Source: Selaginella moellendorffii
Taxonomy: Eukaryota > Plantae > Lycopodiophyta
Reading direction: 5' to 3'
Length of the DNA: 64,000 nucleotides
Assembly (NCBI RefSeq): GCF_000143415.4
Contig: NW_003314312.1
Span: 983,510-1,047,509 of the forward strand
Shown here: positions 8,455-45,400 of the stretch, one piece after another
Layout of the letters: every line of letters starts with the position of its first letter
How positions within the stretch are numbered: position 1 is the first letter of the stretch
Notes under the pieces: model-generated
Databases searched by the model: none
What the model saw: only the letters and a program-made list of their open reading frames with translations
What the model was told of the DNA's origin: nothing
Position numbers and translations under genes: made by a program

Positions 8455-11400
8455 CAAACTCCATTTGACTCTATTTTGCATGTTGGTCCTGGCATTAGGA
8501 TGTTGGATGCTCTAGGACTATTACAAGTTGTTATACCTTCACTCCTTAGGCTATATGCTCAAGAGTTGCACCATTCTCAAGTTCTATTGTTCCTTGGTTC
8601 TATGCTTAAAAGTTTAGCACCCTTTTTTCGTTCAGTGGCCCAAGGCTCTAAAACTCAAGTTTCACACTACTGTCCTTTAGACATATAGCATGTGGCATCT
8701 GGCACATAGAGGGTTTAAGTTTTGTTTCATGGTTATCCAATAGTAAATCACTATAGGATGAAGGGTGAAAACCACGTGTGCTACATTTTGTATAAGAGGT
8801 GAGTCTTAGCAAGTACTATCAATAAAATTGGGCAAATAGTCTTGTTGCATATGTAAAGATGAAAATGATGATTCGAATGGGTACACGTTTGGGTGCTAAG
8901 AGTTCGCATTTGTTCCTTGGGTATGGATTTTGGTTACCTTTTGTATCATATTGTATGAGGTTGCACTTGGGCTCATAAGAAGGATTTGAGGTGTATTGTT
9001 TTACATGAGTTTACACTTGGGCTCATGAGTGAAACATATTAGCAACTCAAAGTTGTATTTTGAGTTAGCAGGATTAATGTTAGTCTATCGATGGTTCAAT
9101 GTATCATGGGTAAAAATAAACCTTCCCTAGGTTTGCTAAGAGTGGTAAATAGGTTGGTCTATAGCTATTTAGCATAGCATTAGTGAATCCTTCTTAGGCT
9201 TGATTATGAATGGATCAATCAAGACTGTAAGGATTAGTTTATTGGTTCAAATAATTATTCTCTCATAAACTTTTCTTGGATTGAATTGAAGGCAATGCGA
9301 ATATAAACTTTGAATCTATCTCATAGTCTTCACTTTAATTTTGATTGAGAGTTGATCATGCATAGCTAACCTCTTTAAAGCATCCTCAAAGTTATTGACT
9401 AGTTGTGTTAGTGAGTTTATTGTGGTTAAGTTGGATTTAAGTGGTCATTTAGTCTGTGTTTGTCTATGTACTTGAGGTGTTACCTTCTTGTTGGACAAGT
9501 ATAATTCGATGATGTGTGTTTAGTGTTTAGGTCTTATAAAGGCAAATTAAAGAGTGATTGTTGGTTGTTTGCAACTAGTGGTTACTTGTAGACTTTGTCA
9601 AGGACTTTTGACATTTGTTTTGCTCGATAAAGATTTATTAGTGATGGGCTTGTTTTGTTAGATGGTGTTGCGAAGGATCATGTCGTTAGACTTACATGAT
9701 TTTTCTATGTTAGCATATTGACTCTACCTTTGTCAATATCATTTGGTTACGTTTAGTCCATGGTATTGAATTTCATTAAGTCTTGGATGTGGTGAATCAC
9801 TCTTTGATGATGTGTTATCAATCACTCCTTGAGGATTGGTCTTAGGTTACTAATTAAGGTATCTTCGACTTTGGTTAACTTGGTTGCTATAGAGCTTTAA
9901 GTGGTAATTTACTTTTGCTTTTTATTAATTTTGTTATGGTGTTAATGGCATTCAAGTGATGCTTTGTTATTGACATTGTTAATATTGAGATTTAAGTAAG
10001 TGGGATGAGACGTCTCTCCATGGGATTAATAATGAGTTTTATTAGTTTCAATGGAGATTATATTAATGATTTGGCTGTAACTTTATGTTCTTAGCATTCG
10101 TGCATTTGCTAATTAGCAATTGTATTGGCATTCAAATAAACTGAGTGGCAAGTTGAGATAATTGTGTTCTAAACAAGATTATTTAATAAAGGTTGAGCTT
10201 TAGCTTTTCCTTGAAAAGTGATTTAGTCATAGACTATGCTACCTTTCCGAAAGAAAGAGTTAGTGATCGATATTGAAATATTTGAATCTTTGTTAGATTT
10301 GAGTTGGGGATATATTAATCATTGATGATTTTTCTTGTATTTGTTATGAAGTGAGTTATGTTTTGTTATAAATGGATTCATGGAGGATTATTTAGTGATC
10401 ACTTGTTAAGTATAACTTCATTGTGCTTAGCTTTTGGATTGATGCAGATATGCTCTTTATTAGTTTTGTATTATAAAGTTTAATTTATGAATGTGTTAAG
10501 GAGGATATTATAAGTTGTGCCATGATTTCTTCTTTAGCATTAAAGTTAGTTTATGTAATACTCGTAATCATTGTTAGACAAGATTTAGTTATATGCTTTT
10601 TTAAACTTTTGATTTTTTGAGTTTTATGCTCATTGTTCCATTTGTTATGAGTTGTTGGGGAAAACATTTTAGTTTATTAACTTTGATGTTCAAGTTAGTA
10701 TTTGCATCTGGCAATCATTAGTGATGATTGACTGTTATTTAGAATAGTTGATTATCCTTATCAAAGATTTTGCTAAATTATTGTTGATGTTGAATGATTT
10801 GCCATTCTTGGTAGATTGTTTCTTTGACAATGATTATGCATCTCTTTATTGTTTGGATGATTAATATTCTTTTATGATGGTTAGTTGTTCTCTTTGATAA
10901 CTTATAGCTTTTTGTATTATCACATGTTCTTTGTGGTTTACTCTGCTTAAGTTTAAAATATTGGTAAGATGTTGCTGACACTTGCTTAAGCAATTTGAGT
11001 TTCTCCGTATTGTTGACTAGGATCTATTTAGGTTAGCTAGTGTGATAGTTAGCATGAATAATTGTTTATTTGTTTTACAATTTTTATTCTGTTTTGTTGA
11101 TTGTTGTTTGAGTTGGTTTTAATAGATTAGGATATTATTTCTTTTGGATAATACATTCACAAGCATTTTGCTTACCATTCGATGATACTTTATATTCTTT
11201 AAGTTATATTTTGTAAGTTGTTTAGCATGCTATCTATAACTTTTGGTAGTTAAATTTTATCATTAAGTTTCTTGATGATATAATTTCTATTGAATTTTTT
11301 TGGATGGTGAATTCTATGTTTTCCAACTATATTAATCTTGGTGATTCCTATACTATCATTCTAATTTATCGGATGATAACTTACTTGGAATACATTTGCA

Positions 11401-15163: not shown

Positions 15164-15853
15164 TCAATGGTGGACGCTCTCCACACGGATTGGAGAGAAG
15201 TAACTGTTGCTCTTGTTCCCAGAGACATGGGAGAGGATCTCTTGAATCATGTTGTTTGTCTTGTTTGTGCAATCCTTGGCATGGATTTCCTTGGACATGT
15301 CCCGGCTCATGCTTGCGCTCCTCCCATCAAACATATACTTGAACAGCGTGCACAAGCTTCCACCTTCCTTAATCTGGACTCCATACCAGATCTTGTCTCC
15401 AGCACATCTAGTCGAGTGGCACAAGTCCTCGAGTCGCCTCATCATGTGGCATCTCGTCCCGCCAATCACCACCAAGAGCTGGGAGTTCCTCGAGGCACAA
15501 TCATCACGGTCTCTACTGCAGAGCTCTTGGGTGAGGAGGCTGTGAAGCTCTTGAGCTCTAGCACAGTGGAGGAAGTCCGGTGCCAGTAGCTTGGATGCCG
15601 ATCGTGGCCAAAAGTCATGAAAATCCCTGTGGGAAGTGATAACTAACCCATCAATCTTGTATACTACCTTGCTGCTCGGATTTTTCTTGGGGACCATGGG
15701 AGGCTCCTCCTGGAGCTCACGCCTTCTCTTTGGAGCACTAATCTTGGTATCAACTTGTCCTTCCTTGTTTCGCTGCCTCTTCTTTCCCTTCTTGATTGCA
15801 TCCATCGCCGCCACAGCGCTAGCCTTCTTGTCCACGCTCTCGATCACTGCCAT
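15164..15853 (-). CDS. Uncharacterised 229-aa ORF, copy 1
   Basis: Long ORF with a basic NLS-like N-terminus (KKGKKRQR, PKRRRE). Head-to-head with the PPR gene, telo-box-like sequence next to the ATG. No recognisable domain. Confidence 0.5.
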   Translation of the reverse strand: MAVIESVDKKASAVAAMDAIKKGKKRQRNKEGQVDTKISAPKRRRELQEEPPMVPKKNPSSKVVYKIDGLVITSHRDFHDFWPRSASKLLAPDFLHCARAQELHSLLTQELCSRDRDDCASRNSQLLVVIGGTRCHMMRRLEDLCHSTRCAGDKIWYGVQIKEGGSLCTLFKYMFDGRSASMSRDMSKEIHAKDCTNKTNNMIQEILSHVSGNKSNSYFSPIRVESVHH

Positions 15854-15989
15854 TAAACCCTGATTGTGTGAATCCTAAAGGGCCCTTTTATATGGTAACA
15901 AAAAATGCAATCAAATCAAAATCTAGTACGGACCGCGAATATTTTATTGATCGTTTATAAGACATGCTCCGTTTAATATAAAGAATCAA

Positions 15990-17702
15990 ATGAGTCCTAG
16001 TTCTTCCACTTCCCGACCTCGATCTTTCCGTTCCAAGCTTGACCGCGCCCACTCCAGCGATTGCGAGGTGAGGAGATTCCTTGCGTCGCTCAAGGAATGC
16101 TCGCGATCCCGGGATCTGGATTGGGGTAAGCAAATCCACGCCGAGGCGGAGTGCTGCGGCCTCGATTCCAATGCGTTCGTGGCGAGCAGCCTGGTGAATC
16201 TCTATGGCAAGTGCGGCTGCATGGACGAGGCGCGCAGGGCTTTCGACCGGATGAACTGCCCCGACCTCGTCGCGTGGAATTCTCTCATTCTGGGCTATGC
16301 CGTGAATGGGCATGGCGGGGTTGCGCTCCAGCTCTTCCTGGACATGGAATCGCGGGGCTTGAAAGGGAATTCTGTCACGTTTATTGGATTGCTCAAGGCC
16401 TGCGCGAGCCTCGCAGAGAAGGAGAATGGGATGGTTTTAGAAGATCTAGAGCTCGTCGTGAAGTTTTCTTCTCTTGAGAGAGGAATGGCTCTTCACTCCC
16501 TTGCCACTGCAAGGGGAATCGACACAAACGCTTTGGTAGCTAGCAGCCTGGTGGAAATGTATGCTCGGTGTGGAAGCGTGGTGGATGCGTGGAAGGTTTT
16601 TCATGGAGCTCCAAAGCGTGACGTAGTTCTATGGACTTCTTTGATGCAGGGTTTTGTAGAGAATGGGCAGAGCGAGGTGGTGCTTGAGCTCTTCGTGGAA
16701 ATGCAACGAGACAGCAGTGGAGCAAATGCCAGAACCTTTGTTGCGGTGTTCCAGGCCATCACTTCTTTAGCAAAGAGGGAACGAGGAGAAGAAACTATCC
16801 ATGGAAGGATACTCAAGCTGAAGTCTCTGGAAAGAGGTATGGCTTTTCACGCGCAAGCCTTGCGAATTACTAACCATCGCTTGGATATCTTTCTTCACAG
16901 CTGCTTGATCCAAATGTACGCGGCTTGTGGCAGCATGGGCGATGCTCTTGGAGTATTTAGCACCATTTTCCAGCCAAATCAAGTCTGCTGGACGGCATTG
17001 ATGCTCGGGTACGTTGAAAACAGCCAGGCCGAAACAGCACTACATTTTTTCTTGCTAATGCAGCTCGAGGGATGTTCTCCAGACGTGTGGACGCTCGTTT
17101 GCGTGCTCAAAGCTTGTGGAAGCTCAGTAGCCTTGAGGCTTGGCCGGATACTTCACGAAGAGATCACGAGCTTGGGGTTCCAGTTCCAGGGAGCCGTGAT
17201 CTCTTCGTTGGTAGATTTCTACAGCAGATGTGGGAGCATGGACGAAGCGGAGCTGGTTTTCAACTCGGTCTCGAGGAAGGATGCTGTGAGTTGGAGCTCA
17301 CTTATCGCGGGCTACAGCCGCCAGGGAGACAACGATCGAGTGATCCAGCTCTTTGAGAAGATGTGTGACGAGGGTGTCAAGCCGGACGGTGTAACTTATG
17401 TCTCGGTGCTCGCGACTTGCAGCCGGGCTGGGATGATCGAGCAAGGCAAGAAATTTTTCCAGGAGATGACGTCTAGGTGTGGATTAGATCCGGGCATTGA
17501 GCACTACCACTGCATGATCGACATGCTGGGACGAGCAAAGCAGATCGAAGAAGCTCTGGAGATGGTGGAAGCTATGCCGTTCGAAGCCACAATGGTCACT
17601 TGGACGAGTTTGCTGGCTGCTTGCTCGAAGTGGAAGAATGGGAGAGTGGAGAAGATTGCTTGTGACAACATCGTCTCTCTCCTGCAGAAGATTTCTCCAT
17701 AG
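15990..17702 (+). CDS. PLS-class PPR protein, 570 aa, ends within the E region (copy 1, intact ORF)
   Basis: PLS triplets; TYVSVLATCSRAG, EHYHCMIDMLGRA, WTSLLAAC. Confidence 0.92.
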   Translation: MSPSSSTSRPRSFRSKLDRAHSSDCEVRRFLASLKECSRSRDLDWGKQIHAEAECCGLDSNAFVASSLVNLYGKCGCMDEARRAFDRMNCPDLVAWNSLILGYAVNGHGGVALQLFLDMESRGLKGNSVTFIGLLKACASLAEKENGMVLEDLELVVKFSSLERGMALHSLATARGIDTNALVASSLVEMYARCGSVVDAWKVFHGAPKRDVVLWTSLMQGFVENGQSEVVLELFVEMQRDSSGANARTFVAVFQAITSLAKRERGEETIHGRILKLKSLERGMAFHAQALRITNHRLDIFLHSCLIQMYAACGSMGDALGVFSTIFQPNQVCWTALMLGYVENSQAETALHFFLLMQLEGCSPDVWTLVCVLKACGSSVALRLGRILHEEITSLGFQFQGAVISSLVDFYSRCGSMDEAELVFNSVSRKDAVSWSSLIAGYSRQGDNDRVIQLFEKMCDEGVKPDGVTYVSVLATCSRAGMIEQGKKFFQEMTSRCGLDPGIEHYHCMIDMLGRAKQIEEALEMVEAMPFEATMVTWTSLLAACSKWKNGRVEKIACDNIVSLLQKISP

Positions 17703-18384: not shown

Positions 18385-21300
18385 GGTGAGTGTTTGGAAT
18401 ATGGAAAGGGAATATAGAAAATGCACATATCAATTAGCCCAAAAACCTTAATTTATATATAGAAGCGAATGGTCTAGATTGAAATCAATTTGACAGTTAC
18501 TAAAATCCCATTACACTAATATTAGTATATAGCATCGTATTGGCCCTCACATCATCCCTTCCTTTTGAAATAATGGAAGGCCGTCAAGGTTTTTTTGTAA
18601 ATAGGCCAGGATTTGAAGGAACATTAGGAGGAGGCATCAGTGGATCTATAGATGATATTAATTGCTCCTGATCCCTTTGTATGAAGCGTTTCAACTGCTG
18701 CACATGCACAATCTCCAGAGGATTGGCTTGTTAGACATCATGCCAAACCTCATAAACTTGTGGTTCAACTTGCCACAACACCTAATACAGTACTTTTCAC
18801 TGTGCAAGGAGCCCCTTAAATAAACCATATATTGTAAGATGGGGAAAACGGACTAACACCAAATCTTCCACGTTGTACTCCGTAGGTGGACAATGATGGG
18901 AGTTGTATTGCCATTGTTGTCCCACTTGTATGCGGCCTAAGTGTTCGGCAGACTCCACTTGGACAAGTGGAAGAATGCTCATCAAATACTGATCCTATGA
19001 CCTAGCATCTGCAGCTTGTGGCAATCACGAAAGTAAACCCAGCTCCTTTGGTAATATTGGATCATAACCATATAGAAGTTTATATGGTAAAGCACTAACG
19101 GAACTCTGCACTCCTGTGACATATGCTTACCGAAGAGACGGCAAATAACCATCTTAATCCGAATGCTGAAAGTTCACATATTTCACAATCATCCCCTTGA
19201 ATGTCCGAACAAGCCGTTCCACCAGACCGTCTGATTGTGGATGATAAGCACTCGTGAAAGTGTGGCGTATCCCCAACCGAGACATCAAAACATGAAATGC
19301 CTCAGCCATAAATGCGGGACGATTATCCGAAAGAATCCGCTCTGGACAATAATGCTAGAACACCACTCAATTAAGGAGGAAGTATCCAACAACAGTTGTA
19401 GAGGCGCTAGCAAGAGCCCCAACTTCCACCCAATAAGTCAAGTAGTTAGACGCAATAATAATATACTCATTGCCAGCAGTTGACTGTGGAAAAGGTCCCA
19501 TAAGATCAAACGCCACCAACTCAAACGGATGGGAAATTGCAATTAACTCCAACCGTTTTTCCGCAACCCAAGGGGGAGTATTACGAGTTTAGCACCAAAC
19601 GCAACTACGCACATACCGGATAATATCACGTCACATCTTCAACTAATAGAAAGACTTGCACAGCTTCTCGGTTACATGACGATGTCCCATATGCCCACCT
19701 AGAACAGGAGAATCATGGTAGGCATAGAAAAATTGCGGAATAAAGATAGAAGGCACCACCAGCCGTAAATGATCCTTAGGATCCGTCCCCACAAAATAAA
19801 AAAGGCCATCTTCAAAGCGATATTGAGAATGTAAATGCCGAAAAGGCAAATCATCAGTAAGTGATGTAGGATTCTCAAACGCATCTCAAAGCCTTCGAAT
19901 CCACGGCTCAATCTTTTGAGCCTCACGAATCTTATCAAGAGAAGGTACATTTTGCTCTGCCCCTTGTGGACACTGAACATCAAGTACAGCAAACGCCGAT
20001 GGCACAGAATCCTCGTCTAGAAAATCCACAGAGGCTGGAATAACAGGCTCATCAGAAACATGAGAAGAGAATAGAAAAGGAAGGGGAGCTCAAGAAAGGG
20101 CATCAGCATCAGCCATAGAACTCCCTGGGCGATGAACAACATCAAAATCATATATCTGAAGCTTCAAAGCCCATCAAGTTGTACAACCAACTACGTTCTT
20201 TCGCTTCAATAATGAAGTAACAGTAGCATGATCACCTTTAAGTAACATTCGAGAACCATGTAGATATGCATGAAGTTTCTCGAAACCCCAAACTGCTGCT
20301 AAACACTCCTTCTTTGTTGTGGAGTAGTTCATTTCTGCTGGTTGTAATGTACGGTTTATATACGCAATGGGATGGCGCTGACCAGGCACACTCGAGCTCT
20401 CTTGCATCAACACACCTTCAAGACTAATGTCAGAAGCATCCACGCGCAAAATAAAAGGTCAAGTGTAATCAGGATATGCCAAAACTAGAGGAGTCGTTAA
20501 CAGTTTCTTGAGATCCCCGAACGCCCACTCATAATCCGGAGACCAGATGAAAGATGATGTTGATGACTTCAGCAATACTCACAACGGTGCAGTGCGATTA
20601 GAAAGATGATCCACAAAATGACCGAGATACTGCACCTTGCCCAAAAAGCGCTACACATCATTCACACAGTTCGGAGTAGAGAACTTTAGAATAGCCACAA
20701 GTTTGTTAGGATCAACTTGTAAACCCTCACGAGAAATACAGCACCCAAGATAAGTTGTATCCTTGGACCCAAACACGCACTTCGACTGCTTCAGCTTTAA
20801 ACCAACGTTGCGTAGCCGATCCAACACTTTACAAACATCACGAACGTGCTCCTCCCACGTCCCTTCCGAGTGGATCAAGACATCATCAATAAAGTCAGCA
20901 GTCACCTTTGACATATTACAAAGAACATTGTCCATCATCCGCTAAATAGTTGCTGGAGCATTATTCAAACCAAACAGCATCACCAAGAACTCGTACAAAT
21001 CAAATGGTGTACGAAAAACAGTCTTAGGAATATTTTCTTCGGCCATCGGTATTTGCCAGTACCCAGAAGCAAGATCTAACTTGGTGAATCAACGACTTCG
21101 CCCCAGACAATCCAAAAGATCAGTAGTGTGAGGAAGAGGGTACACATCAGGGATCGTCACTTCGTTTAACGGACGATAGTCAATGCAAAAACGAATACTC
21201 CCATCAAGTTTCGCCACAAAATGAGGTTCACATGCCCAAGGACTCCGCGACTTCCGAATAACACCCTTCTCCAACATCTCCTTGACATTTGCACGTAAAA

Positions 21301-24978: not shown

Positions 24979-25668
24979 TCAATGGTGGACGCTCTCTACA
25001 CGGATTGGAGAGAAGTAACTGTTGCTCTTGTTCCCAGAGACATGGGAGAGGATCTCTTGAATCATGTTGTTTGTCTTGTTTGTGCAATCCTTGGCATGGA
25101 TTTCCTTGGACATGTCCCGGCTCATGCTTGCGCTCCTCCCATCAAACATATACTTGAACAGCGTGCACAAGCTTCCACCTTCCTTAATCTGGACTCCATA
25201 CCAGATCTTGTCTCCAGCACATCTAGTCGAGTGGCACAAGTCCTCGAGTCGCCTCATCATGTGGCATCTCGTCCCGCCAATCACCACCAAGAGCTGGGAG
25301 TTCCTCGAGGCACAATCATCACGGTCTCTACTGCAGAGCTCTTGGGTGAGGAGGCTGTGAAGCTCTTGAGCTCTAGCACAGTGGAGGAAGTCCGGTGCCA
25401 GTAGCTTGGATGCCGATCGCGGCCAAAAGTCATGAAAATCCCTGTGGGAAGTGATAACTAACCCATCAATCTTGTATACTACCTTGCTGCTCGGATTTTT
25501 CTTGGGGACCATGGGAGGCTCCTCCTGGAGCTCACGCCTTCTCTTTGGAGCACTAATCTTGGTATCAACTTGTCCTTCCTTGTTTCGCTGCCTCTTCTTT
25601 CCCTTCTTGATTGCATCCATCGCCGCCACAGCGCTAGCCTTCTTGTCCACGCTCTCGATCACTGCCAT
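24979..25668 (-). CDS. Uncharacterised 229-aa ORF, copy 2
   Basis: Protein identical to 15164-15853. Confidence 0.5.
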   Translation of the reverse strand: MAVIESVDKKASAVAAMDAIKKGKKRQRNKEGQVDTKISAPKRRRELQEEPPMVPKKNPSSKVVYKIDGLVITSHRDFHDFWPRSASKLLAPDFLHCARAQELHSLLTQELCSRDRDDCASRNSQLLVVIGGTRCHMMRRLEDLCHSTRCAGDKIWYGVQIKEGGSLCTLFKYMFDGRSASMSRDMSKEIHAKDCTNKTNNMIQEILSHVSGNKSNSYFSPIRVESVHH

Positions 25669-25804
25669 TAAACCCTGATTGTGTGAATCCTAAAGGGCCC
25701 TTTTATATGGTAACAAAAAATGCAATCAAATCAAAATCTAGTACGGACCGCGAATATTTTATTGATCGTTTATAAGACATGCTCCGTTTAATATAAAGAA
25801 TCAA

Positions 25805-27517
25805 ATGAGTCCTAGTTCTTCCACTTCCCGACCTCGATCTTTCCGTTCCAAGCTTGACCGCGCCCACTCCAGCGATTGCGAGGTGAGGAGATTCCTTGCG
25901 TCGCTCAAGGAATGCTCGCGATCCCGGGATCTGGATTGGGGTAAGCAAATCCACGCCGAGGCGGAGTGCTGCGGCCTCGATTCCAATGCGTTCGTGGCGA
26001 GCAGCCTGGTGAATCTCTATGGCAAGTGCGGCTGCATGGACGAGGCGCGCAGGGCTTTCGACCGGATGAACTGCCCCGACCTCGTCGCGTGGAATTCTCT
26101 CATTCTGGGCTATGCCGTGAATGGGCATGGCGGGGTTGCGCTCCAGCTCTTCCTGGACATGGAATCGCGGGGCTTGAAAGGGAATTCTGTCACGTTTATT
26201 GGATTGCTCAAGGCCTGCGCGAGCCTCGCAGAGAAGGAGAATGGGATGGTTTTAGAAGATCTAGAGCTCGTCGTGAAGTTTTCTTCTCTTGAGAGAGGAA
26301 TGGCTCTTCACTCCCTTGCCACTGCAAGGGGAATCGACACAAACGCTTTGGTAGCTAGCAGCCTGGTGGAAATGTATGCTCGGTGTGGAAGCGTGGTGGA
26401 TGCGTGGAAGGTTTTTCATGGAGCTCCAAAGCGTGACGTAGTTCTATGGACTTCTTTGATGCAGGGTTTTGTAGAGAATGGGCAGAGCGAGGTGGTGCTT
26501 GAGCTCTTCGTGGAAATGCAACGAGACAGCAGTGGAGCAAATGCCAGAACCTTTGTTGCGGTGTTCCAGGCCATCACTTCTTTAGCAAAGAGGGAACGAG
26601 GAGAAGAAACTATCCATGGAAGGATACTCAAGCTGAAGTCTCTGGAAAGAGGTATGGCTTTTCACGCGCAAGCCTTGCGAATTACTAACCATCGCTTGGA
26701 TATCTTTCTTCACAGCTGCTTGATCCAAATGTACGCGGCTTGTGGCAGCATGGGCGATGCTCTTGGAGTATTTAGCACCATTTTCCAGCCAAATCAAGTC
26801 TGCTGGACGGCATTGATGCTCGGGTACGTTGAAAACAGCCAGGCCGAAACAGCACTACATTTTTTCTTGCTAATGCAGCTCGAGGGATGTTCTCCAGACG
26901 TGTGGACGCTCGTTTGCGTGCTCAAAGCTTGTGGAAGCTCAGTAGCCTTGAGGCTTGGCCGGATACTTCACGAAGAGATCACGAGCTTGGGGTTCCAGTT
27001 CCAGGGAGCCGTGATCTCTTCGTTGGTAGATTTCTACAGCAGATGTGGGAGCATGGACGAAGCGGAGCTGGTTTTCAACTCGGTCTCGAGGAAGGATGCT
27101 GTGAGTTGGAGCTCACTTATCGCGGGCTACAGCCGCCAGGGAGACAACGATTGAGTGATCCAGCTCTTTGAGAAGATGTGTGACGAGGGTGTCAAGCCGG
27201 ACGGTGTAACTTATGTCTCGGTGCTCGCGACTTGCAGCCGGGCTGGGATGATCGAGCAAGGCAAGAAATTTTTCCAGGAGATGACGTCTAGGTGTGGATT
27301 AGATCCGGGCATTGAGCACTACCACTGCATGATCGACATGCTGGGACGAGCAAAGCAGATCGAAGAAGCTCTGGAGATGGTGGAAGCTATGCCGTTCGAA
27401 GCCACAATGGTCACTTGGACGAGTTTGCTGGCTGCTTGCTCGAAGTGGAAGAATGGGAGAGTGGAGAAGATTGCTTGTGACAACATCGTCTCTCTCCTGC
27501 AGAAGATTTCTCCATAG
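25805..27517 (+). pseudogene. PLS PPR copy 2 with a premature stop (CGA>TGA at 27152-27154)
   Basis: Protein otherwise identical to 15990-17702. Confidence 0.9.
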
Positions 27518-34875: not shown

Positions 34876-36059
34876 CTCTATGAAAATGTGTTATTGTTGG
34901 TTGAGTTGTAGACTGAAAAATAATGAATCATAATTTTTATTATACTAATAGTTATAATGTTTTAAAGTTTAATAATTTATAATTTAATTTGATTCAGAAA
35001 TAAATTTATATTTTTTATTAACTTAAACATATCTATTTATTTCTTTTCTATTTTAATATTGAATTTTGTTTTCACTTTTGTTTTCTTTCAATAAATTTAC
35101 AAAACTCCAAATTCACTTAGATGGTTACAAAGAATGATAGTTTATTAAATTAGTAGGATGTTAAGTTAAAGATTGTAATATTTCATGATAGAAAGAATGT
35201 TTATTGTAGATACTATTATTATTACATGGTTTCAAATGTTTTAAGCTGCACAAAATTTAAACAAAGGACCTTAAAGAGAAAACCAAATGTGGGAAAAAAA
35301 AAAGCTGCTAAAGGCTAGTATATAGAAAAATTGAATTCACTTTTAAAAATGGATATTTGTGGGTGGAGCAATTGTTTTAGTTATCATTTACACAGACCAC
35401 ATTTCTGTTGAGACTACTTGCAATGTTTTTATTTTTTGCCACCTCTTGGGATGTTTTGAGTAACCATAGCTATGATCAATTAATGCAGCAATTTGACTAT
35501 TATTGTGGCTTTTGTTAGGATTTTAGCTTCTTAAACTTTTGCATCATATACAAATTGGTATTGTTACCTGGTTATGTGGTTCCAACATATATCACACCCA
35601 AAGCAACAAGGAGTGGAGCTTAGCATCTTCATGGAGCACAACCTCCAAATAAAATCTTTTGGATTTTGGATTTCAATTTGATTTAGATCTAGTATTTTGA
35701 TATTTTTGTTATTATGTTGAATGACATTAATTATGCACACTGCCATCAATAAATTGCAACAATTATCCCAAGGCTAGAAATCTACATTTGCCTATGCATT
35801 TGAATTCTAGATGGCTGCCATTGATATTTCATGGGATAATGCACAACACCAATAGTTCCTTAGTTCCAAGCCAAAGATTAGTATGCAACTATAGTTTAAG
35901 GGCATGTAGTCTAGGTTGCATAATTTTCACAACCAATTTAAACTCAGAATCACTATACACTCTAGCCAGTATTTAGGCCGAAATACGATAGAAATAAGGG
36001 ATAGGGATCAAGTGTTAACTCTCCTCTTTAACTACTCTTACATGGTGGTAATTGCCACT

Positions 36060-36940
36060 TCTTAAATCCTGACTGTCAAGATTGTAACCTTGAGTGTGAA
36101 AGTTGTGATCCTGGCTATCAAGAAAATGCTCAAATGCATAATTAATCAATTATACTCTATAAGAACTTATGCTTGAAGCTAGCTATGTCATCTTTATCCT
36201 ATTGAACAACCTCAACTTTATATATGAGGTTGTGATGTGTGTAGTAGAAGTTTGTTTCAAGTGATTCTTTTCCAGGTGCATTATGAATCTTATTGGTGTC
36301 AATATTATGGGTGTCCAAGGAAAGCATGAAAAGGTGAGTACGTATTTTATATTTTTATTTAATTTCTAAACTTTTTTATTTTCTAGATTGGACCTATCAT
36401 GCCTTTTGCAGAAACATATATGACAGGTTTCATGATAAAAAGTGTGCAACATGTGTTTTGCCTACGTATGACAATTCCACTTATATCATACCCAACCTTG
36501 TGAATGAGTAGATTCACAATATGTTTCCAAGGTACTGATTTCAAACTCCATTGACGATGCAAGTCTTACTTGAGCTTTATTCCCACCAAATGGTGTTATG
36601 ATTAATTATACAATAGGTAAAAATTCTATGGTGGAGGTAGCACATGACTTTGGCAGATTAGTGTTTGCTATTGAAGAACATCATTTCTTCAAATATCGGA
36701 TTAGAGGATTTTGTGAGTTGCCTCCAACTTTAGGGAGGTAAATTATGTTTATTAAGATTTTAATACATATTTAGTTCTGTTTTATAGATTACAGTCACTT
36801 AGAGTTTCTAGAATTGGAGGCTTTGGAAGTCTCTTCGACTATATAGAAGCTATGGTTCAACAAATGCAAAGTGAATCTTCCCCACAATACCAATATAAAA
36901 AGAGGCATAAAAAGAATTAATGTGTTGATAATGAGGTAAA
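36060..36940 (+). pseudogene. Intron-containing C4HC3 (PHD/RINGv-like) zinc-finger pseudogene
   Basis: CDVCSRSLF...CQYYGC..|DWTYHAFC...KKCATC across a GTGAGT..TTCTAG intron (~36334-36387). Second intron GTAAAT..TTATAG. Many stops. Inverted copy at ~43940-44820. Confidence 0.5.
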
Positions 36941-37165
36941 AGAAAGTTAATTGCATCCTTACATGAAATGAAAAGCTTGTTATATGTTAAATGTCTATAA
37001 AAGTGTTAGTGTTAGATATCATAATTGCAAATTATCATTCTCACCTATCAGTATCACTTTATACCACTTGTGTGTTGGCATTTCTTCCTTTAACATCTTA
37101 TAAACAATTGTATGTATAATAGTATCATCTAGAACAAGGTATATTACCTATAGCTAATATCATTT

Positions 37166-37232: not shown

Positions 37233-38727
37233 TTCTTTTAAAAGTGACAATACTATAGTATAGTAAAGTAATTCTAAATCTTATATTCTACTATAGGGTA
37301 GCATAAAAACCCTATATTTCACACTAGTTAATGCAATGTTTATCAAGGGGATGTTGTTCCTCATTATGAAGCAATAGTGGATATGTATCTATAATTCATT
37401 CTTGAATCTATTGTACATTTACATATGCACATTTTATAGATTTATTATTGGCTAGTTGCTATAGTGCTCAAGAAAAGTTTGTAAACCTATAAAGCCATTT
37501 GTTTTATAAAAAAAAAGGTTATGCATTAGACATTAAATATAATAGTGTTTTATGCTTTCAAATAGTCCTGCCATGTTAGGAACAAGATCTTGCAAAACTA
37601 TATGGCATTATTATTGAAGCATTAAAGGCAATCCTTCTTTAGTAACAAGATTTAGAATTTCATATATAAAGAGCTCTAGTTCACCTTCTCTAAAACCCCC
37701 AATAAAAAGAGGAGTATTATGTGGAGGTAAAAGTGGAATATTGGTAGAACTTCGGGATAAAAGTGGAGATTAATATGAAATTTTTGGGGGCCAAGTATGA
37801 GTAACAATGACTTTCTTTCAAGCTATTTTGATACAAATTTCCAAGGAGCCTATATAGCCATTCAAATGTAATTAAGCTTGTATAAGATTAAATATAAAAA
37901 GCTTGATTAATATTGACCTCATATGTGATTTTATAATTGTTTATTTTCTTCCTTGATGCCATTACATGATCAATTTTTACTAACTAAGTGATATTTGCAA
38001 TTTCTCAAAAAGGGTAGGGGACTAAGGAAAAAAGGAAAAAAGGTATCCTAGTAAGAAAAAGATTTAATTAGTCCCACATAACAAGAATATTAGCTAAAAT
38101 GTATGGTGATATAAAATTTATCTTGGTTAAAAAAACTATGAAACCTAGAGTACCAACTTTTGCATTACAACTTTTACTCACAAATCTTTTATTTTCCTTG
38201 TTTCCCATCTTCTTTTGAATGAAAAAATAGTATGTACAGTTGTAAAAGTAATCAAATCAAAATATAACAATTACAACAGTAGTCATAATAAAATAATATA
38301 GCTTTACAAAAAATAAATTCTTAGTGTATCAAGTACATAGATAAAAGTTCCATGGGTCAGATGACGAAGCACAGTGCCACACTGCAACACAACTTGAAGA
38401 ACTGTTCTTCAATCTCTCAACTTGGGAGAGTTATAGCGCTTTCCTGACCCTGTGGGTTCATATATGGGAGAGCTTACCTTGAGGACAAACCAGCATTGCT
38501 TGTAGTAGAACGAGTTGTGTGCATCTTGTGGATGCTGGAGAGGACTCTTGTGCTGCTGGTGATTCTGGTGATGGAGCGACAGCGGTATTCGACGAGCCCT
38601 CACCCGGAATTCAAAAGTGATTGCTGTGGGGCTTTGATTACTCCGTGACGTGGCAGTTGCTTTGGGTTTTCAAGGAATCTTAGCCCTGGCATTGCAGCAC
38701 TCCTGGATCTCGGCCACGTAAATTTGC

Positions 38728-38758
<31 letters not shown>

Positions 38759-38866
38759 GCTCCTCGTCATTCCCTGCTGATCCCAGGATCTGAGGGAGAG
38801 AGAGAGCGAGCGAGAGAGAGGGCTACAAACGTTCGTCTCGTAATTCCAAAAGAGTTTGGCGTCTAT

Positions 38867-40000
38867 CTACAAGCGGCAAAGAGCAACGAAGATGCCCTCC
38901 ACAATGAGAGCTGCGAGCTCTCCCGGACTTCCCGTGGCTCCTGCGCGCGTGAGAACAGAGAGATACTGTCCATGTCTCGCCGGCGGAACGCCGCTCAAAT
39001 CCTCCGCATTCGCCGAGGCCCGCGTGAGTAAGGACCGCCACTCCTCCCTACCGATCAAACTCGCCTCGCCCAAGTGCCGCTCTGTCGAGCCAACATCCAG
39101 CAGCAGCGTAAGGGGGAAGTGGAGGCCAGTGACTCCCGAGACCAGGTACGTGAGCAGCAATCGTCCAAGCCGTCCATTCCCATCACCGAAGGGATGGATC
39201 GCCTGGAACTCCAAGAAGAAGCGCGCTGCCAATTTGGCCACGTCCACCACGAATGCAGCACTTCCCATCTCCCTCGCGTAGTACACGTTCTCCAGCTCGC
39301 TGTTGGTGGCGGCCACTAGCAGCTCCATCTCCTCCCTGATCATCTCCGGTGCCACTCTCTCGCTCGACAATGTGCCATCCAGCTGCTTTATCCAAGCTCG
39401 CTGGATCCGATAGTCACCTATCCGCGCATCCTCCTCTGTCGGACTCGCGACAACCACCGCGTGGAGCTTCTTGATCCTCGAGATGGAGAGGTGGGGCACG
39501 GGCACTCGGCTGCTCAGCTCCTTATCTTTCGAGATCCAATCCTTAATGTCTTCCAGCCCGTTGCAAAAGCTCACAAGCCGCCGCTTCTTATCCTCGTCCA
39601 CGTAAAAGCCTCCATCGCCGTCGCTTGCTCCAATCGCCACCGCCGTCTCGGCTACAGACTCCATTCCTACATAAGACCAATGTTAAAAGGCCTTTAACCT
39701 TTTCCTAGCTAGCTTTTTACCTGCATTCATCTCCCACACCCGCTTAGATCACTAGACTTCTCTGGAGCAGCGCTGCCCCGTCTTTCCTTGTCCATGCGTC
39801 GTGAATCGCCCGTCGCAGCAGCAGCGCCTCTACACCCTACCTATCTTGGTGCAAGCAGCAAACACGAACAGCGCGAGCATTGCACGATCTTGCTCCGGCG
39901 GCAGCGGCTGCGCGATCTTCGTCGATATAGCATCAGCCACAGTGGTGAGATCGCTCCAGCGCCAAGCCGGACGAAGCGGGACCCGAAACCCTAGCGCCAT
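38867..40000 (-). CDS. Fic/Fido-domain protein A (predicted 319 aa; exons 40000-39841 and 39666-38867)
   Basis: Catalytic motif HPFGDGNGRLGR (39161-39196), LSISRIKKLH and GDYR. The upstream exon MALGFRVPLRPAWRW...MLALFVFAACTKI joins in phase 1 (G|GA) and aligns with the N-terminus of Fic B (PAWR; ML..FV). TATAAAA at 40040-40046. Confidence 0.85.
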
Positions 40001-40735
40001 CACTACTAGCACAAAAGAAGAATACTACAAGCCCCGCCCTTTTATAGCCTCTTCCTTCCAGAATATTCTCTAGCTCTAGGGTTCTTCCGTGGGAGAAGCG
40101 CGGGAAATGCAGCCGGGGCGATCGATCACGCCAGCCGCGACGTCGCGAATCCGGCCGCATTCGCTAGGTCCGGAAATATTCCTCGCGGATTGGAGCTCGA
40201 GGCAGTGGCGAATATGGCCGTCCGGGTGGAGCTCGCAGATGGGGCGAAGCTCCAACGCTCTTCCCGCAAAGGTCGGGGCTGCGATCTCTCATTTCTTCTC
40301 TTCAAGCTTCTCATAGCTTTTTCGTATGTTTTTTTTTCCTTTCTTTGTTTGCTTTAGCTTCCGCCAGGCATTGAGATGGCTATCGATGCCACAGGAGCTC
40401 CACTTTTTGGAGATTGTTGTTTTTCTGGTGCGTTGATGCGTTGATATCACGGTAATTTAAGCTTTCACCTTATAGATTCTTTCCAATGACAGGTTCTCTC
40501 TTCTTCTTTATAGAATCCAATACGTTACTGCAAGATATTGTTCATCTTGTGTGGCTGCTAGCTTATGATCGATGCTTGTCTCAGTGGACGTCTACGCTCT
40601 CCAAAGGTACATGGCGTGACCATCCTCACTGTTGTGGATAAGCCACTCAAGGGCATCACGCCACTGGAGATCCATCTCCTGTTGCTTAACTTTTTTCGTT
40701 CTCTATGCCAAGGTAAGTCTCTGTGGCTTTAGCCT

Positions 40736-41701
40736 TCACTGAGAGTGTTGTCTTCCAGGATCATCATCAGTCCTACACGTTTGTGGAGCTTCCATCCCCG
40801 CCGCCACGAAAAACTTCTTCCACCCGACATAGAGGCCTTCGGTGTAGATGGCAATGAGTCGGCCGGGATCTCGGGTCTCTGAAGACGATGCGTGCTGCCC
40901 CTCCTGCTTCTCCTCCTGAAAGCAGCTGCGGTACAAGCCATAGTCAACAATGTCTTCACTGTCCACCAGGTACGCATTGTTGGGGGCCAGCTGAGGTGTG
41001 ATGCTGGAGAGGAGATAGGCGAGCAGGAGCCTTCCAACCCGTCCGTTTCCGTCTCGAAACGGATGAATAAGCTCGAAGTTGAGGAAGAAATCGACTGCCA
41101 GGTGCAAGAGCTTAGCAGTAAAGGTTGCAAGATCTTCTTGCTCGGTGCAGAAGACGTCGTCCAGCTTGGTGTTGGTGTCGCCCAGGAGCTGCTGCAACCT
41201 GTGAGGTACCTGGGAGTGCTCCACGAACTGGTGAAAGGAGCCGTCCTTGAGGCGAACCCAGACGTCGCGGTCCCTGAATCTGCCCGCCTCCGCCTCCCAT
41301 CCATCGCGGTTCTGGAAGAGGACCTTGTGGAGCCTCTGGATGGCCGATATCGTCAAAACTGGCTGCCGGGACTCGCCAGCAGCTTGCTCCACCAGGCGAT
41401 AGGCGTCGTGCAGGTTGACGGTGACAACGAAATCCTCCTCGTGTTGCTGCTGCGCGTCTCCTCGAGTAACTGCATCAATGACGGCCCGCGTCTGAGGGAT
41501 GGAATCGTAGCCTTCGCCGTTGATGGTGTTGACTTGGTACACGAAATCCACTAGCATTTGCTTCCGGCAGAGGGCCGCCGCTGCCTCGTTGATCTGTGTC
41601 GATGATTTGTAGAACTCGCCAAGGAAGCTCGCGATGGCTCTTACCAGCCAGGTCGTGCTGCGCCGCACCCTCTTCCGCCACGCCGGATGCTCAATCGCCA
41701 T
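40736..41701 (-). CDS. Fic/Fido-domain protein B (321 aa, intronless; class II-like with N-terminal inhibitory motif)
   Basis: HPFRDGNGRVGR (41030-41065), LTISAIQRLH, AGRFRDRDVWV, and FVYQVNTINGEG with TINGEG matching (S/T)xxxE(G/N). TATAAAA at 41749-41755. Confidence 0.92.
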   Translation of the reverse strand: MAIEHPAWRKRVRRSTTWLVRAIASFLGEFYKSSTQINEAAAALCRKQMLVDFVYQVNTINGEGYDSIPQTRAVIDAVTRGDAQQQHEEDFVVTVNLHDAYRLVEQAAGESRQPVLTISAIQRLHKVLFQNRDGWEAEAGRFRDRDVWVRLKDGSFHQFVEHSQVPHRLQQLLGDTNTKLDDVFCTEQEDLATFTAKLLHLAVDFFLNFELIHPFRDGNGRVGRLLLAYLLSSITPQLAPNNAYLVDSEDIVDYGLYRSCFQEEKQEGQHASSSETRDPGRLIAIYTEGLYVGWKKFFVAAGMEAPQTCRTDDDPGRQHSQ

Positions 41702-42459
41702 CTCTTGTGCTCTGCCCTAAGGTTTGGAATAGGTGCAACACTTTTCTATTTTATAGAACGCACTACCTTTTATTATGAATTTATCCATGTTGCTATTCCT
41801 TTTTTATTTATAAGCCTTTTTTGGGCATGTGACAGTGGTACAAAAGTACAGTGACCTTTTTGAATTCAAACACATAGGCAAATTAAGATTTAGAGCTTGC
41901 ACAACTGCTACACTTTTGTTTAATGTTGCTAAACATACTTATGAAGCATATAAAAAACAAAAAGATCAAAATTCTAAAGAATATCCTTCAAAAGGGTTAT
42001 ACATCCCATTTGATAATCTTGAATATCAATTATATTATGGTGATTTGAAGTTAAACTTAGTTGAAAAAGTCACGAAACATGGACGACATGCCATTAAACT
42101 TTGTTGTATATACCAATTTTTGGCTAAATTGCTCTTGATGTTAAATAATTTATTAGAGTTATGAGTGAAATGCTATATTAGTGTTGTAAATGTGACTATG
42201 GGTATTAAAAACTACTTGTCAATAGGTCTTTTTGAATATTCTTTTTATACTACTATAACAATAGGAGATTAGTATTGTTAGTTCCTTTTATTAGTCTCTG
42301 CCCATGCTAGTTTAGAAACCCATGCTTATAGCATTGAAATTGTAGCATGGATACATACCCAAAATAAATATAATTTCCTTTCCAAAAAAAGTAAGTAATA
42401 TTTTTTCTAGTTCTCAACCCTTTTTGGGGAGAGTGATCATGTTCTTTAGGATTTCAATG

Positions 42460-45400
42460 TTTTTATTATTTGAGTGCTTCATAAACATTGAGCAACACCA
42501 ATAAAACACATATCACCATTAACAAATTGTAACAATTGTGCCACAGCTCTAAATTTATGCATTTGAGCTTTAGATGGTCTCTGGTATAATACATATTTAA
42601 TGGAATAATGCACAACACCAAAAATGGCTCTTTTTTTTTCCAAATTAAAGGTTGATATATAAAGACATGTACTCTAGGTTTCATATTTTTCTCATAAGTT
42701 AAACTTTATATCACCTTACACTTTAGCCAATATTCTAAGATACTTTTTGTCCTTTTTCCCTTAGTCCCTTGCCCTTTTTGAGAAATTGCAAATATCACTT
42801 ACTTAGTAACCACTCAAAGAGAGAGAAACTAATTATGTAATGGCAATAAGGAAGAAAGTAAATAGTTATCTGGAAAGGGTGTTATTACTCTCGTACAAGC
42901 AATTAGAGTGGAATATTGAGTACATTGCATGGTAGGATCTTGTTGAGTCTAATATAAATCTAATTACATTTGAATGGGTGCCTAAAGCCAATTGTGTATG
43001 TTACTGTTATTTTTTACACTAATTACCACATGCTATATGGTAAAAAAATATTTTTGCTTTTTTCTTTCACAAATAAATGAGCTAGCAGATCCTCACATTA
43101 TCCATTGAGACATCAAATCATCAATAGCAATAAAACATAATAATAATTAATTCATCAAAGTGATAATTTTTGTAGTGAATAGTTTTCACCTATAAACATC
43201 ATCACTCAGGGAAAATATGGATGGATTGCTAATAATATGCTAAAGCAAGGGATGACCATAAAAAATTTGCTTCCCCATGATAGAGAGTGTTACATCATTA
43301 TCTTTGAGACAAGAGAGGTGTACCAGTAAGCAAAATTGGGATGATTAATAATGGTTAGGTGGTTTCATTTCACCCATGGGTGTCAAGATTCATGGCAAAG
43401 GAGTGGAACTCTCAATGAAGTGTTTAAGGAATAAGTATGAAATGAGTAATAAGTGAGTCTCTAGAAAAGGGATACAAGAGGACTAACATATGACATATGA
43501 AAGTGTCAAAATGGACCCAAGATGAAGTTCGAGATAGACCTGAGACAAAGTCCAAGATGGAATCTAAGATGGACCTGAGATGGAATCCAAAATGGACCCA
43601 AGATGGAGTCCGAAATGGAGTTCGAGATAGAGTTTGAGATAAAGTTCAAGATGGACTTGAGATGGAGTCTGAGATAGAGTCCGAGTTGGAGTCTAAGATG
43701 GAATCTGATATTAGTTATAGGTAATATACCTTCTTCTAGACAATGCTATCTTACATACAATTGTTTACAAGATATTGAAGGAGGAGATGGCAACACACAA
43801 GTGTTATAAAGAGATATTGATAGGTGAAAATGATAATTTGCAATTATTATATTTGACATTAACATTGTCACTAATATCTAACACTTTCACAAACATCTTA
43901 ATAAGTTTTTCATTTTATGTAAGGATGCAATTAACTTTCTTCTACCTTATCATCAATATATTGATTCCTTTTATACTTTTTCCTATAATGGTATTGTAGG
44001 GAAGATTCACTTTGCATTTGTTGAGCTATAGCTTCTGTATAGTTGAAGAGACTTCCAAAGCCTCAAATTCTAGAAACTCCAGGTAATTATGATCTATAAA
44101 ACAAAACTAAACATGTATTGAAAATCTTTATAGACATAATTTACCTCCTTAAGGTTAGAGGCAACTCATAAAATCCTCTAATTTAGCATTTGAAAAATAA
44201 TGTTCTTTAATAGCAAACAATGACCTACTAGAGTCATATGCTGCCTCCACTATAGAATCATTATCTGTTGTCCAATTAATCACAACACTATCTAGTGGGC
44301 AATAAAGCTCAAGCAAGATTTGCATCACTGATAAAGTTTGAAATTAATACTCTGGAAATGTGTTGTAGATTTGCTCATCCACAAGGTTGGGTATGATGTT
44401 AGTGGAACTATCATACTTAGAAAAACTATGTGCTACATACTTGTTATCACGAAACTTGTCATGTGTGTTTCTACAAAAGGCATGATAAGTCCAATCTGGA
44501 AAATAAGAAAGTTTAGAAATTAGATAAAAATATAAAGTATATACTCACCTTTTCAAGCTTCCCTTGGACGCCCATAATATTAACACCAATAGGTTTTATA
44601 ATCCACCCAGAAAAGAATGACTTGAAACAAACTTTTGCTGCATATATCATAAGCTTATACATAGAATCGAGGTTGTTTGGTAGGATGAAGACAACATGGC
44701 CAGCTTCAAGTATAAATGCTTATGAAATATAGTTGATTAACCATGCATTTGGGCATTTTCCTAACAATAAGAATTATGACCTTAACACTCAAGGTTACAG
44801 TCTTGATAGTTAGGACTTAGAAAGAAGTGGTAATTACCACCATGTAAGAGTATTTAAGGGGGAGTACTTAGGATTTTAATACCTTTCTTATTTAAGTGCT
44901 TCATAAGTATGTGAAACAACACTAATAAAAAACACACCACCATCAATAAGTTGTAGCAATTGTGCCAAAGCTCTAAATTTATATTTGCCTATGCATTTGA
45001 GTTTTAGATGGTCTCTATTAATATTTCATGGTACAATATATATTTCATGGGATAATGCATAACACTAAAAATGGATTTTTTAGTTCTAAACCAAATGTTG
45101 GTATATGAGGACATGTACTCTAGGTTTCATAGTTTTCTTAACCAAGTTAAACTTTATATCAATATACACTTTAGCCAATATTCTACTTTAATTTGTTATA
45201 TAAGATTAATTAAATCTTTTTCTTACTCCCTAACCAAACAAAAATCCATCTTAAAATAAATATATTACATAATATTAAATATTTTAAAGTAGTATATTTA
45301 ATATTTTTTATTAAGGTTGGGAATCTTCACACAACAACAAACTTGCTCTACATGAGAATGCCTTATTCATTGATTACCTCAAGAATGCCTAAGTTATGCT

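Follow-up and report, generated by a model that had tools for sequence, protein, structure and literature searches.

A 64,000-nucleotide stretch of the Selaginella moellendorffii genome (contig NW_003314312.1, positions 983,510 to 1,047,509; hereafter the window) carries two genes for Fic proteins on its minus strand: gene 1, with a Fic open reading frame (ORF) of 265 amino acids (aa) at 39664..38867, and gene 2, an intronless ORF of 321 aa at 40736..41701. AMPylation by Fic enzymes has been studied in bacteria and, through the single endoplasmic reticulum (ER) enzyme FICD, in animals. Among eukaryotes, Fic proteins have been assigned to metazoa plus a few fungi (Kinch et al. 2009, PMC2686095), and plant members, unnamed and in a mixed clade, have received a passing mention in a supplement (Khater & Mohanty 2015, PMC4454073). 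Our literature search found no papers on lycophyte or fern Fic enzymes, and both Selaginella genes already stand in RefSeq and UniProt as annotated, uncharacterised entries. Here, we describe the structure, transcription, genomic copies and relatives of the pair, and consider it likely that they are genuine, transcribed nuclear genes for soluble Fic-fold nucleotidyl transferases, most likely AMPylases, belonging to a clade of fern and lycophyte proteins within a wider family distinct from FICD.

Parts of the stretch are present in 20 sequencing runs from 9 studies, and we aligned contigs from four runs, each of a different study, to both Fic genes. We take these contigs to derive from RNA because they contain canonical splice joints. 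The RNA-like contigs cover gene 1 as well as they cover gene 2, with zero depth at the gene 1 promoter (39952–40072) and beyond about 41890; the RNA check proposed with the original prediction for this locus thus finds both genes transcribed. Across gene 2 the contigs of all four runs follow the genome colinearly; upstream, most of them stop at 41681–41732 and one extends to 41834. All indels among variants of the coding sequences (CDS) are in frame, namely 21, 9 and 6 nucleotides (nt) in gene 1 and 9 nt in gene 2.

The original prediction, made from the DNA letters, had described two divergent genes of about 320 aa on one strand, each with a complete HPFxDGNGRxxR motif and a TATAAAA 40–50 nt upstream. 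The shared strand and the length of gene 2 stand; gene 1 encodes 269 aa according to the RNA-like contigs and reaches 319 aa only in a model of the Joint Genome Institute (JGI) type. The proteins are indeed divergent (32% identical over about 210 residues), and each carries the complete catalytic motif, HPFRDGNGRVGR in gene 2 (41065..41030, minus strand; H213-PFRDGNGRVG-R224) and HPFGDGNGRLGR in gene 1 (39196..39161, minus strand; H157–R168 of the 265-aa ORF), whose columns are invariant across our family alignments. Against Pfam Fic (PF02661, gathering cut-off 24) gene 2 scores 62.5 bits (E 7e-17) and gene 1 47.4 bits (E 3.6e-12). Hidden Markov model score and complete HxFx(D/E)GN(G/K)RxxR motif together assign both genes, as judged from sequence, to the Fic/Fido superfamily. 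TATAAAA elements lie on the minus strand 48–54 nt before the gene 2 ATG (41755..41749) and 40–46 nt before the ATG at 40000 of an ORF upstream of gene 1 (40046..40040). The transmembrane and tetratricopeptide repeat (TPR) region of animal FICD is missing, as had been claimed: a Pfam scan of both proteins returned no TPR family at E<=0.01, only two helices precede the gene 2 core, and we found no N-terminal transmembrane anchor, the maximum Kyte-Doolittle 19-residue means (1.28–1.61) falling in core helices only. Fic_N (PF13784) and the C-terminal winged helix had no match in either protein. We also considered the Doc toxin, whose motif is HxFx(D/N)(A/G)NKR without a flap, and rejected it, as both genes read GNGR and a flap is predicted in gene 2.

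Gene 2 carries the N-terminal motif P6-AWR9 and a C-terminal helix with P279...E288-G289. Between the N-terminus and the core it contains T59-I-N-G-E63-G64 (41510..41527, minus strand), which fits the inhibitory-helix pattern (S/T)xxxE(G/N) and would make gene 2 a class II Fic protein. This TINGEG motif sits at the end of a helix predicted at residues 39–61 by AlphaFold2 (AF2), and HMMER aligned T59, E63 and G64 onto TVAIEG of Caenorhabditis elegans FIC-1 (5jj6), the Glu of which is the residue mutated in PDB entry 5jj7 (E274G). RefSeq lists gene 2 as XP_024542721.1, 'adenosine monophosphate-protein transferase fic-1', identical to our ORF except for the absence of residues 20–36. The corresponding in-frame 51-nt GT..AG segment (41644..41594, minus strand) is removed in the RefSeq model and kept by all RNA-like contigs (4 runs, no joint); its residues form a confident helix in the AF2 model and have counterparts in the fern protein P0112. 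The segment may be an alternatively spliced exitron. An older JGI model, SELMODRAFT_421388, splices the catalytic core out of gene 2 entirely, and automated annotation has therefore partly hidden the family.

Structural prediction of the gene 2 protein from an 80-sequence alignment yielded an AF2 model with a predicted local distance difference test (pLDDT) score of 89.8 and a predicted template modelling score of 0.90, where a single-sequence model reached a pLDDT of only 33.8. Searching PDB with this model in Foldseek gave 56 matches at E<=1e-3, and 50 of 50 among the matches listed are Fic proteins. The best is BT_2513 (3cuc), with template modelling (TM) scores of 0.66/0.78, and FICD and FIC-1 align at TM about 0.55–0.62. 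The model places the strands of a beta-hairpin flap at residues 148–150 and 156–158, before the motif helix, so that gene 2 is predicted to have the Fic fold, a helical core with a flap. By sequence, the closest solved structures are C. elegans FIC-1 and human FICD, at family-profile E values of 3.8e-20 and 4e-17.

Gene 1 is interrupted by a 54-nt GT..AG intron (39720..39667, minus strand; context CAG/GTAAAA ... TGTAG/G) that is skipped in RNA-like contigs of three studies, where it appears as CT..AC on the plus strand; the spliceosomal intron of the original prediction is thus borne out. The second exon (38867..39666, minus strand) consists of the 265-aa Fic ORF, with its ATG at 39664, and 2 nt of the junction codon, the joint 39665/39720 occurring in X1, X6 and X8. 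In the spliced mRNA the first in-frame start adds M-N-A-G (ATG AAT GCA G, 10 nt, 39721..39730, minus strand) to the 265 residues, giving a protein of 269 aa whose N-terminus is the same as that of RefSeq XP_024515748.1 and XP_024515750.1, the products of the other two copies of the gene. All family-invariant core residues are retained and the C-terminal family motif is present. A long GA/CT microsatellite occupies part of the 3' untranslated region (38722–38825), where the genomic copies differ by indels of 58, 12 and 11 nt.

Upstream of the gene 1 Fic ORF lies a second ORF of 56 codons (40000..39830, ATG to TAG, minus strand), the first part of which, 40000..39841, is the JGI 'exon 1'. It encodes the N-terminal PxWR helix of the family as PAWR, which gene 1 has only here, and a remnant of the inhibitory helix without its Glu; compared with the other copies it shows two indels, of 18 and 6 nt, both in frame. 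In the spliced mRNA the two ORFs share one frame with three stops between them, and the observed contigs do not join them. They are joined in the 319-aa JGI-type model SELMODRAFT_421387 (EFJ17092.1; 'Fido domain-containing protein' in UniProt), which connects donor 39840 to acceptor 39667; no contig uses this donor, although contigs can miss minor isoforms. At the inhibitory position the window has TKIG and the other allele VIG, the Glu being gone in both. Gene 1 lacks the class II inhibitory motif, and its RNA-supported CDS begins downstream of that position.

In the interval that separates the two Fic genes, the RNA-like contigs also reveal a spliced transcript of the plus strand (about 40107..40714). 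It runs divergently from the promoter of gene 1 and converges on the 3' end of gene 2. Its GT..AG joints (40272–40357 and 40427/40451–40492/40512) include alternative donors and acceptors. A 120-aa ORF spans its exons in the window and is frame-shifted in the other copies; we therefore treat the transcript as probably non-coding, or as a very young ORF, and on the same frameshifts ruled out the 120-aa ORF as a protein partner. A class I Fic toxin–antitoxin module was likewise rejected, since (S/T)xxxE(G/N) is absent from both the 56-codon upstream ORF and the 120-aa ORF. Further along, highly expressed contigs, up to a depth of 142, match a 55-nt piece at 38530–38584 and are unrelated to the window on both sides of it; the piece resembles a lone exon or a fragment captured from some other gene.

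Gene 2, the plus-strand transcript and gene 1 together occupy a 3.6-kb block (38328..41909) that recurs twice on scaffold GL377636.1, in copies (L001 and L002) that lie about 120 kb apart in opposite orientation and are 98–99% alike. This makes three copies on two Mb-scale scaffolds, and the gene 1 ORF is intact in all of them. By blastn the block in the window matches the other two at 92.5–92.8% including gaps, with 0.5–2% substitutions. Between the window and L001 the gene 2 CDS differs by 5/957 substitutions (0.5%; two synonymous, three non-synonymous), a four-fold lower divergence than in the neighbouring non-coding DNA (19/954, about 2%; Fisher p 0.004), and the gene 1 CDS by 11/800 (1.4%); as a basis for dN/dS these 5 and 11 changes are too few for a verdict. 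In L002 the gene 2 copy is broken by an assembly gap (a run of N at about 8589–8773), so the truncated JGI model there reflects no real disruption. A further piece of gene 1, 245 nt of its 3' end (19110–19354), lies in L002 about 8 kb away from the complete block and adjoins an inverted copy of the downstream flank.

On either side of the block lie the arms of an imperfect, AT-rich inverted repeat, the left (36021..37162) matching the right (44864..43706) at 81% over 1160 nt; repeats of this family also border the L001 and L002 copies. The arms are 68–81% alike and partly non-colinear, and we found no clean terminal inverted repeats or target-site duplication around the block and no transposase within it. 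Block and repeats together fit a segmental duplication and do not demonstrate a mobile cassette. The window also encodes three PPR genes, a CSD-CCHC cold-shock protein, a hybrid histidine kinase and a pectate lyase, in keeping, like the copies on two scaffolds, with the land-plant nuclear context that the original prediction assumed. The Fic block has a GC content of about 0.51 between AT-rich flanks, a level shared by all gene islands of the window against their AT-rich spacers. Elsewhere in the window a recent tandem segmental duplication (15164–17702 and 24979–27154, about 9.8 kb apart) has one 229-aa ORF per unit, next to a PPR gene, and the two ORFs are 100% identical.

Searching 1.84 billion cluster representatives with a profile yielded 367 proteins at E<=1e-10. 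Family members share an N-terminal PxWR, the Fic motif, a TPFP-like segment and a C-terminal 'P..L.A.I.EG.W' helix; their genes are mostly intronless, often arranged in arrays, and encode about 300–400 aa. For this PxWR Fic family of eukaryotes and giant viruses our literature search turned up no published description. Gene 2 is assigned to it by both its N-terminal and C-terminal motifs, and gene 1 by its C-terminal motif, PxWR being present only in its upstream ORF. Members could be placed in Chlamydomonas euryale (P0105, EukProt), in EukProt P0071/P0251 and on a Tara Oceans scaffold. A further search with the family alignment added one more EukProt member, its best 8000 candidates being mostly generic Fic, and among the top matches of an Atlas search is a Fido cluster of eukaryotes, most of them molluscs. 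The fern Adiantum nelumboides has two family genes, both solitary, on contigs of 4.4 and 1.7 Mb, one in a neighbourhood (L003) of Ty3-type retrotransposons; RNA contigs close to one Adiantum gene belong to the family as well. No seed-plant proteins occur among the named matches, which agrees with the earlier claim that Fic is no recognised part of the angiosperm toolkit.

Two loci of the wider family deserve description in their own right. One 620-kb contig with an SH2 exon (L008, 4138–10927) bears three tandem intronless Fic genes of 306, 401 and 308 aa, and looks like an animal-type expansion of the PxWR family. The other (L012/L013, 6001–6798) encodes a Fic protein, P0233, with a canonical SNRIEN inhibitory motif next to genes for 2C_adapt, PL14 lyase, protein kinase, PNK3P and Ro60/TROVE; this context is giant-virus-like, and could be a vehicle for spread among eukaryotes.

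In a 50-row tree the two Selaginella genes, the two Adiantum genes (P0111 and P0129) and the RNA-derived relative P0112 form a plant clade (support 98/91), beside a clade of prokaryotic class II Fic proteins (99/93) and one of the remaining eukaryote and virus-like rows (99/94). The family is thus not particular to the Selaginella lineage, contrary to what had first been supposed: fern genes share its clade, and the PxWR and EG motifs tie it to a wide family. Lycophyte–fern identity is about 33%, and that between the plant clade and the wider PxWR family about 20–25%. Gene 2 pairs with P0111 (99/71); as an approximately unbiased (AU) test does not reject a Selaginella-only clade of gene 1 and gene 2 (p 0.16), this pairing in the free tree does not fix the timing of the duplication. 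The inhibitory Glu-Gly is kept in gene 2, P0111 and P0112 and lost in gene 1 and P0129. P0129 (L007, 3001–3885) reads KIEKGG, with Gly for Glu, where the closely related P0112 (L004) reads KIEKEG, and such loss therefore recurs within the plant clade. One row, P0145, had been taken as FICD-like by length and motif position, and a PDB search showed otherwise.

We infer AMP chemistry, regulation, cell location and targets by analogy with FICD and other Fic enzymes. Gene 2 is predicted to be a complete, self-inhibited class-II-type enzyme of the FICD kind, in which His213 would activate a Ser, Thr or Tyr hydroxyl of the target for attack on the ATP alpha-phosphate, Asp217, Asn219, Arg221 and Arg224 would hold Mg-ATP, and the beta-hairpin flap (about residues 148–158) would dock the target. 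Glu63 of TINGEG would block productive ATP binding and could support de-AMPylation too. Gene 1, with the inhibitory Glu gone and, in the transcripts seen, the N-terminal module as well, would be either an AMPylase without restraint whose production upstream ORFs keep low, or a copy on which constraint has relaxed. The cytosolic location and defence role suggested in the original prediction may apply. More speculatively, the two genes might act as a functional pair, writer and eraser or driver and brake, in the cytosolic AMPylation of proteins in seed-free vascular plants, a non-FICD system inherited or spread as the 3.6-kb unit, with gene 1 as a constitutive AMPylase kept scarce by upstream ORFs and gene 2 as its regulated, AMP-removing partner; we regard this arrangement as decidedly improbable.

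Several observations weigh against reading both genes as working AMPylases of a plant Fic clade. Fic enzymes with the same motif can transfer groups other than AMP. The register of the inhibitory motif depends on the method, the MAFFT family alignment being shifted by two residues relative to HMMER, and the side-chain geometry of Glu63 in gene 2 is therefore a prediction. The sequencing runs are presumed to be RNA, and their contigs give no strand, ends or minor isoforms. Few family members carry taxon labels, some of these from gene context only, and the tree leaves out FICD, the relation to which rests on profile and fold scores. Gene 1 gathers most of the remaining objections: several upstream ATGs precede its Fic ORF in the leader, it has the longest branch of the tree, between copies it has 7 non-synonymous and 4 synonymous changes (pN/pS 0.58), and its divergence is not separable from that of non-coding DNA (Fisher p 0.36).

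These last points bear directly on whether gene 1 is a transcribed but decaying duplicate, its N-terminal exon cut off by stops and a shifted donor, so that only gene 2 works. The three in-frame stops, the lost Glu (with a 6-codon deletion at that place in one allele), the near-neutral divergence, the long branch and a changed 269-aa start codon in variant X5 (39730 T>C) would all be expected of decay. Yet a 265-codon ORF with a perfect motif and the family-invariant core survives at 32% identity to its paralogue, the ORF is kept in 3/3 genomic copies, 3/3 indels of the most divergent variant are in frame and RNA-like coverage is as good as that of gene 2, and we think decay rather unlikely. 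The same copies could instead be viewed as a mobile or selfish cassette of a toxin–antidote type, in which gene 2 or the upstream peptide restrains the gene 1 core and the unit spreads through duplication between inverted repeats. The block does occur three times with the same flanks, between inverted AT-rich repeat copies, with a stray gene 1 3'-end fragment next to an inverted flank copy in L002, and gene 2 has an inhibitory motif where gene 1 has none. We nevertheless judge this very improbable: the arms are diverged and in places non-colinear, without clean termini or target-site duplication, the block holds no transposase, neither the upstream peptide nor the plus-strand ORF contains (S/T)xxxE(G/N), the fern relatives are solitary, and the copies may be haplotypes plus one segmental duplication.

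The origin of the family admits a further alternative, that of the original prediction, in which Fic genes were acquired horizontally from a bacterium, a virus or another eukaryote and domesticated into an AMPylation system. Family members occur in scattered places (Selaginella, Adiantum, a single green alga, contigs of animal-like type and one resembling a giant virus), seed-plant proteins are missing from the named matches, family genes are mostly intronless, and Fic phylogenies show much transfer generally (PMC4454073; PMC2686095). No donor emerged when viral contigs and prokaryotic genomes, one for each species, were scanned; the matches are generic Fic genes at a distance. Among 185,579 species genomes the best prokaryotic match has 31% identity over residues 53–264, or two thirds of the protein, viral contigs show no more than 35%, and that over parts of it, and the nearest prokaryotic sequence relatives of the Selaginella genes lie at E about 1e-8. 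With no prokaryote or virus closer than about 35% over part of the protein, a recent bacterial transfer is unsupported, and horizontal acquisition becomes a possibility for a deep ancestor rather than a demonstrated event. Both genes have their nearest relatives in a fern, the lycophyte–fern identity of only about 33% is as compatible with deep vertical descent followed by loss in seed plants as with transfer, and PxWR, common to the eukaryote and virus family, was not seen in one archaeal relative (P0004) or in the few labelled prokaryotic rows of our motif survey. Transfer could then only be an old event, at or before the lycophyte–fern ancestor, or separate old transfers, and we hold it to be fairly unlikely; current labels do not separate ancient transfer, with large DNA viruses as possible carriers, from ancient descent with loss. 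Bacterial or other assembly contamination would also explain Fic genes, commonest in bacteria, in a block of GC about 0.51 between AT-rich flanks. We discount it almost completely, as every gene island of the window has the same GC pattern, PPR, CSD-CCHC, histidine-kinase and pectate-lyase genes lie on the same contig, the 54-nt intron is spliced, copies occupy two Mb-scale scaffolds, the stretch was found in 20 runs of 9 studies and there is no close prokaryotic relative.

If the reading of genuine, transcribed plant Fic genes is true, an expressed, intact Fic clade of a lycophyte and a fern, free of transmembrane and TPR regions, would offer a tractable entry to Fic-mediated modification in plants, with a natural pair of genes with and without the inhibitory Glu. 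Its significance is bounded by the facts that the genes are already in databases, that the chemistry is as expected and that cooperation of the two genes is unsupported.

The Selaginella proteins can be compared with several related systems. FICD/HYPE in humans and FIC-1 in C. elegans are ER-resident enzymes that AMPylate and de-AMPylate BiP. With these the Selaginella proteins share the Fic fold (TM about 0.6, from the gene 2 model), the complete HPFxDGNGRxxR motif, the best sequence match among solved structures and, in gene 2, an in-cis N-terminal TxxxEG that aligns on TVAIEG of FIC-1. They differ from FICD and FIC-1 in having no membrane anchor and no TPR, in their own PxWR and C-terminal EG helices, in an identity of about 19% in structural alignment and in the missing Glu of gene 1. 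The class II proteins of bacteria and archaea (BT_2513/3cuc, SoFic and the Fic_N+Fic+wHTH architecture) include the best fold match and have the same motif and an N-terminal inhibitory helix, but the Selaginella proteins lack Fic_N and the winged helix, and the prokaryotes form a clade of their own, at identities of at most about 31–35% over part of the protein. In class I systems, FicT/FicA and VbhT/VbhA, the resemblance lies with gene 1, whose core has no in-cis inhibitory helix and whose small upstream ORF encodes a homologous helix; unlike them, this small ORF lacks the inhibitory Glu and the context is eukaryotic and monocistronic. The PxWR family of eukaryotes and giant viruses (P0105, P0071/P0251 and the proteins of L008 and L012/L013) agrees with the Selaginella proteins in PxWR, Fic motif, TPFP-like segment, C-terminal EG helix and length, and it is beside this family, at about 20–25% identity, that the Selaginella and fern genes form a clade of their own.

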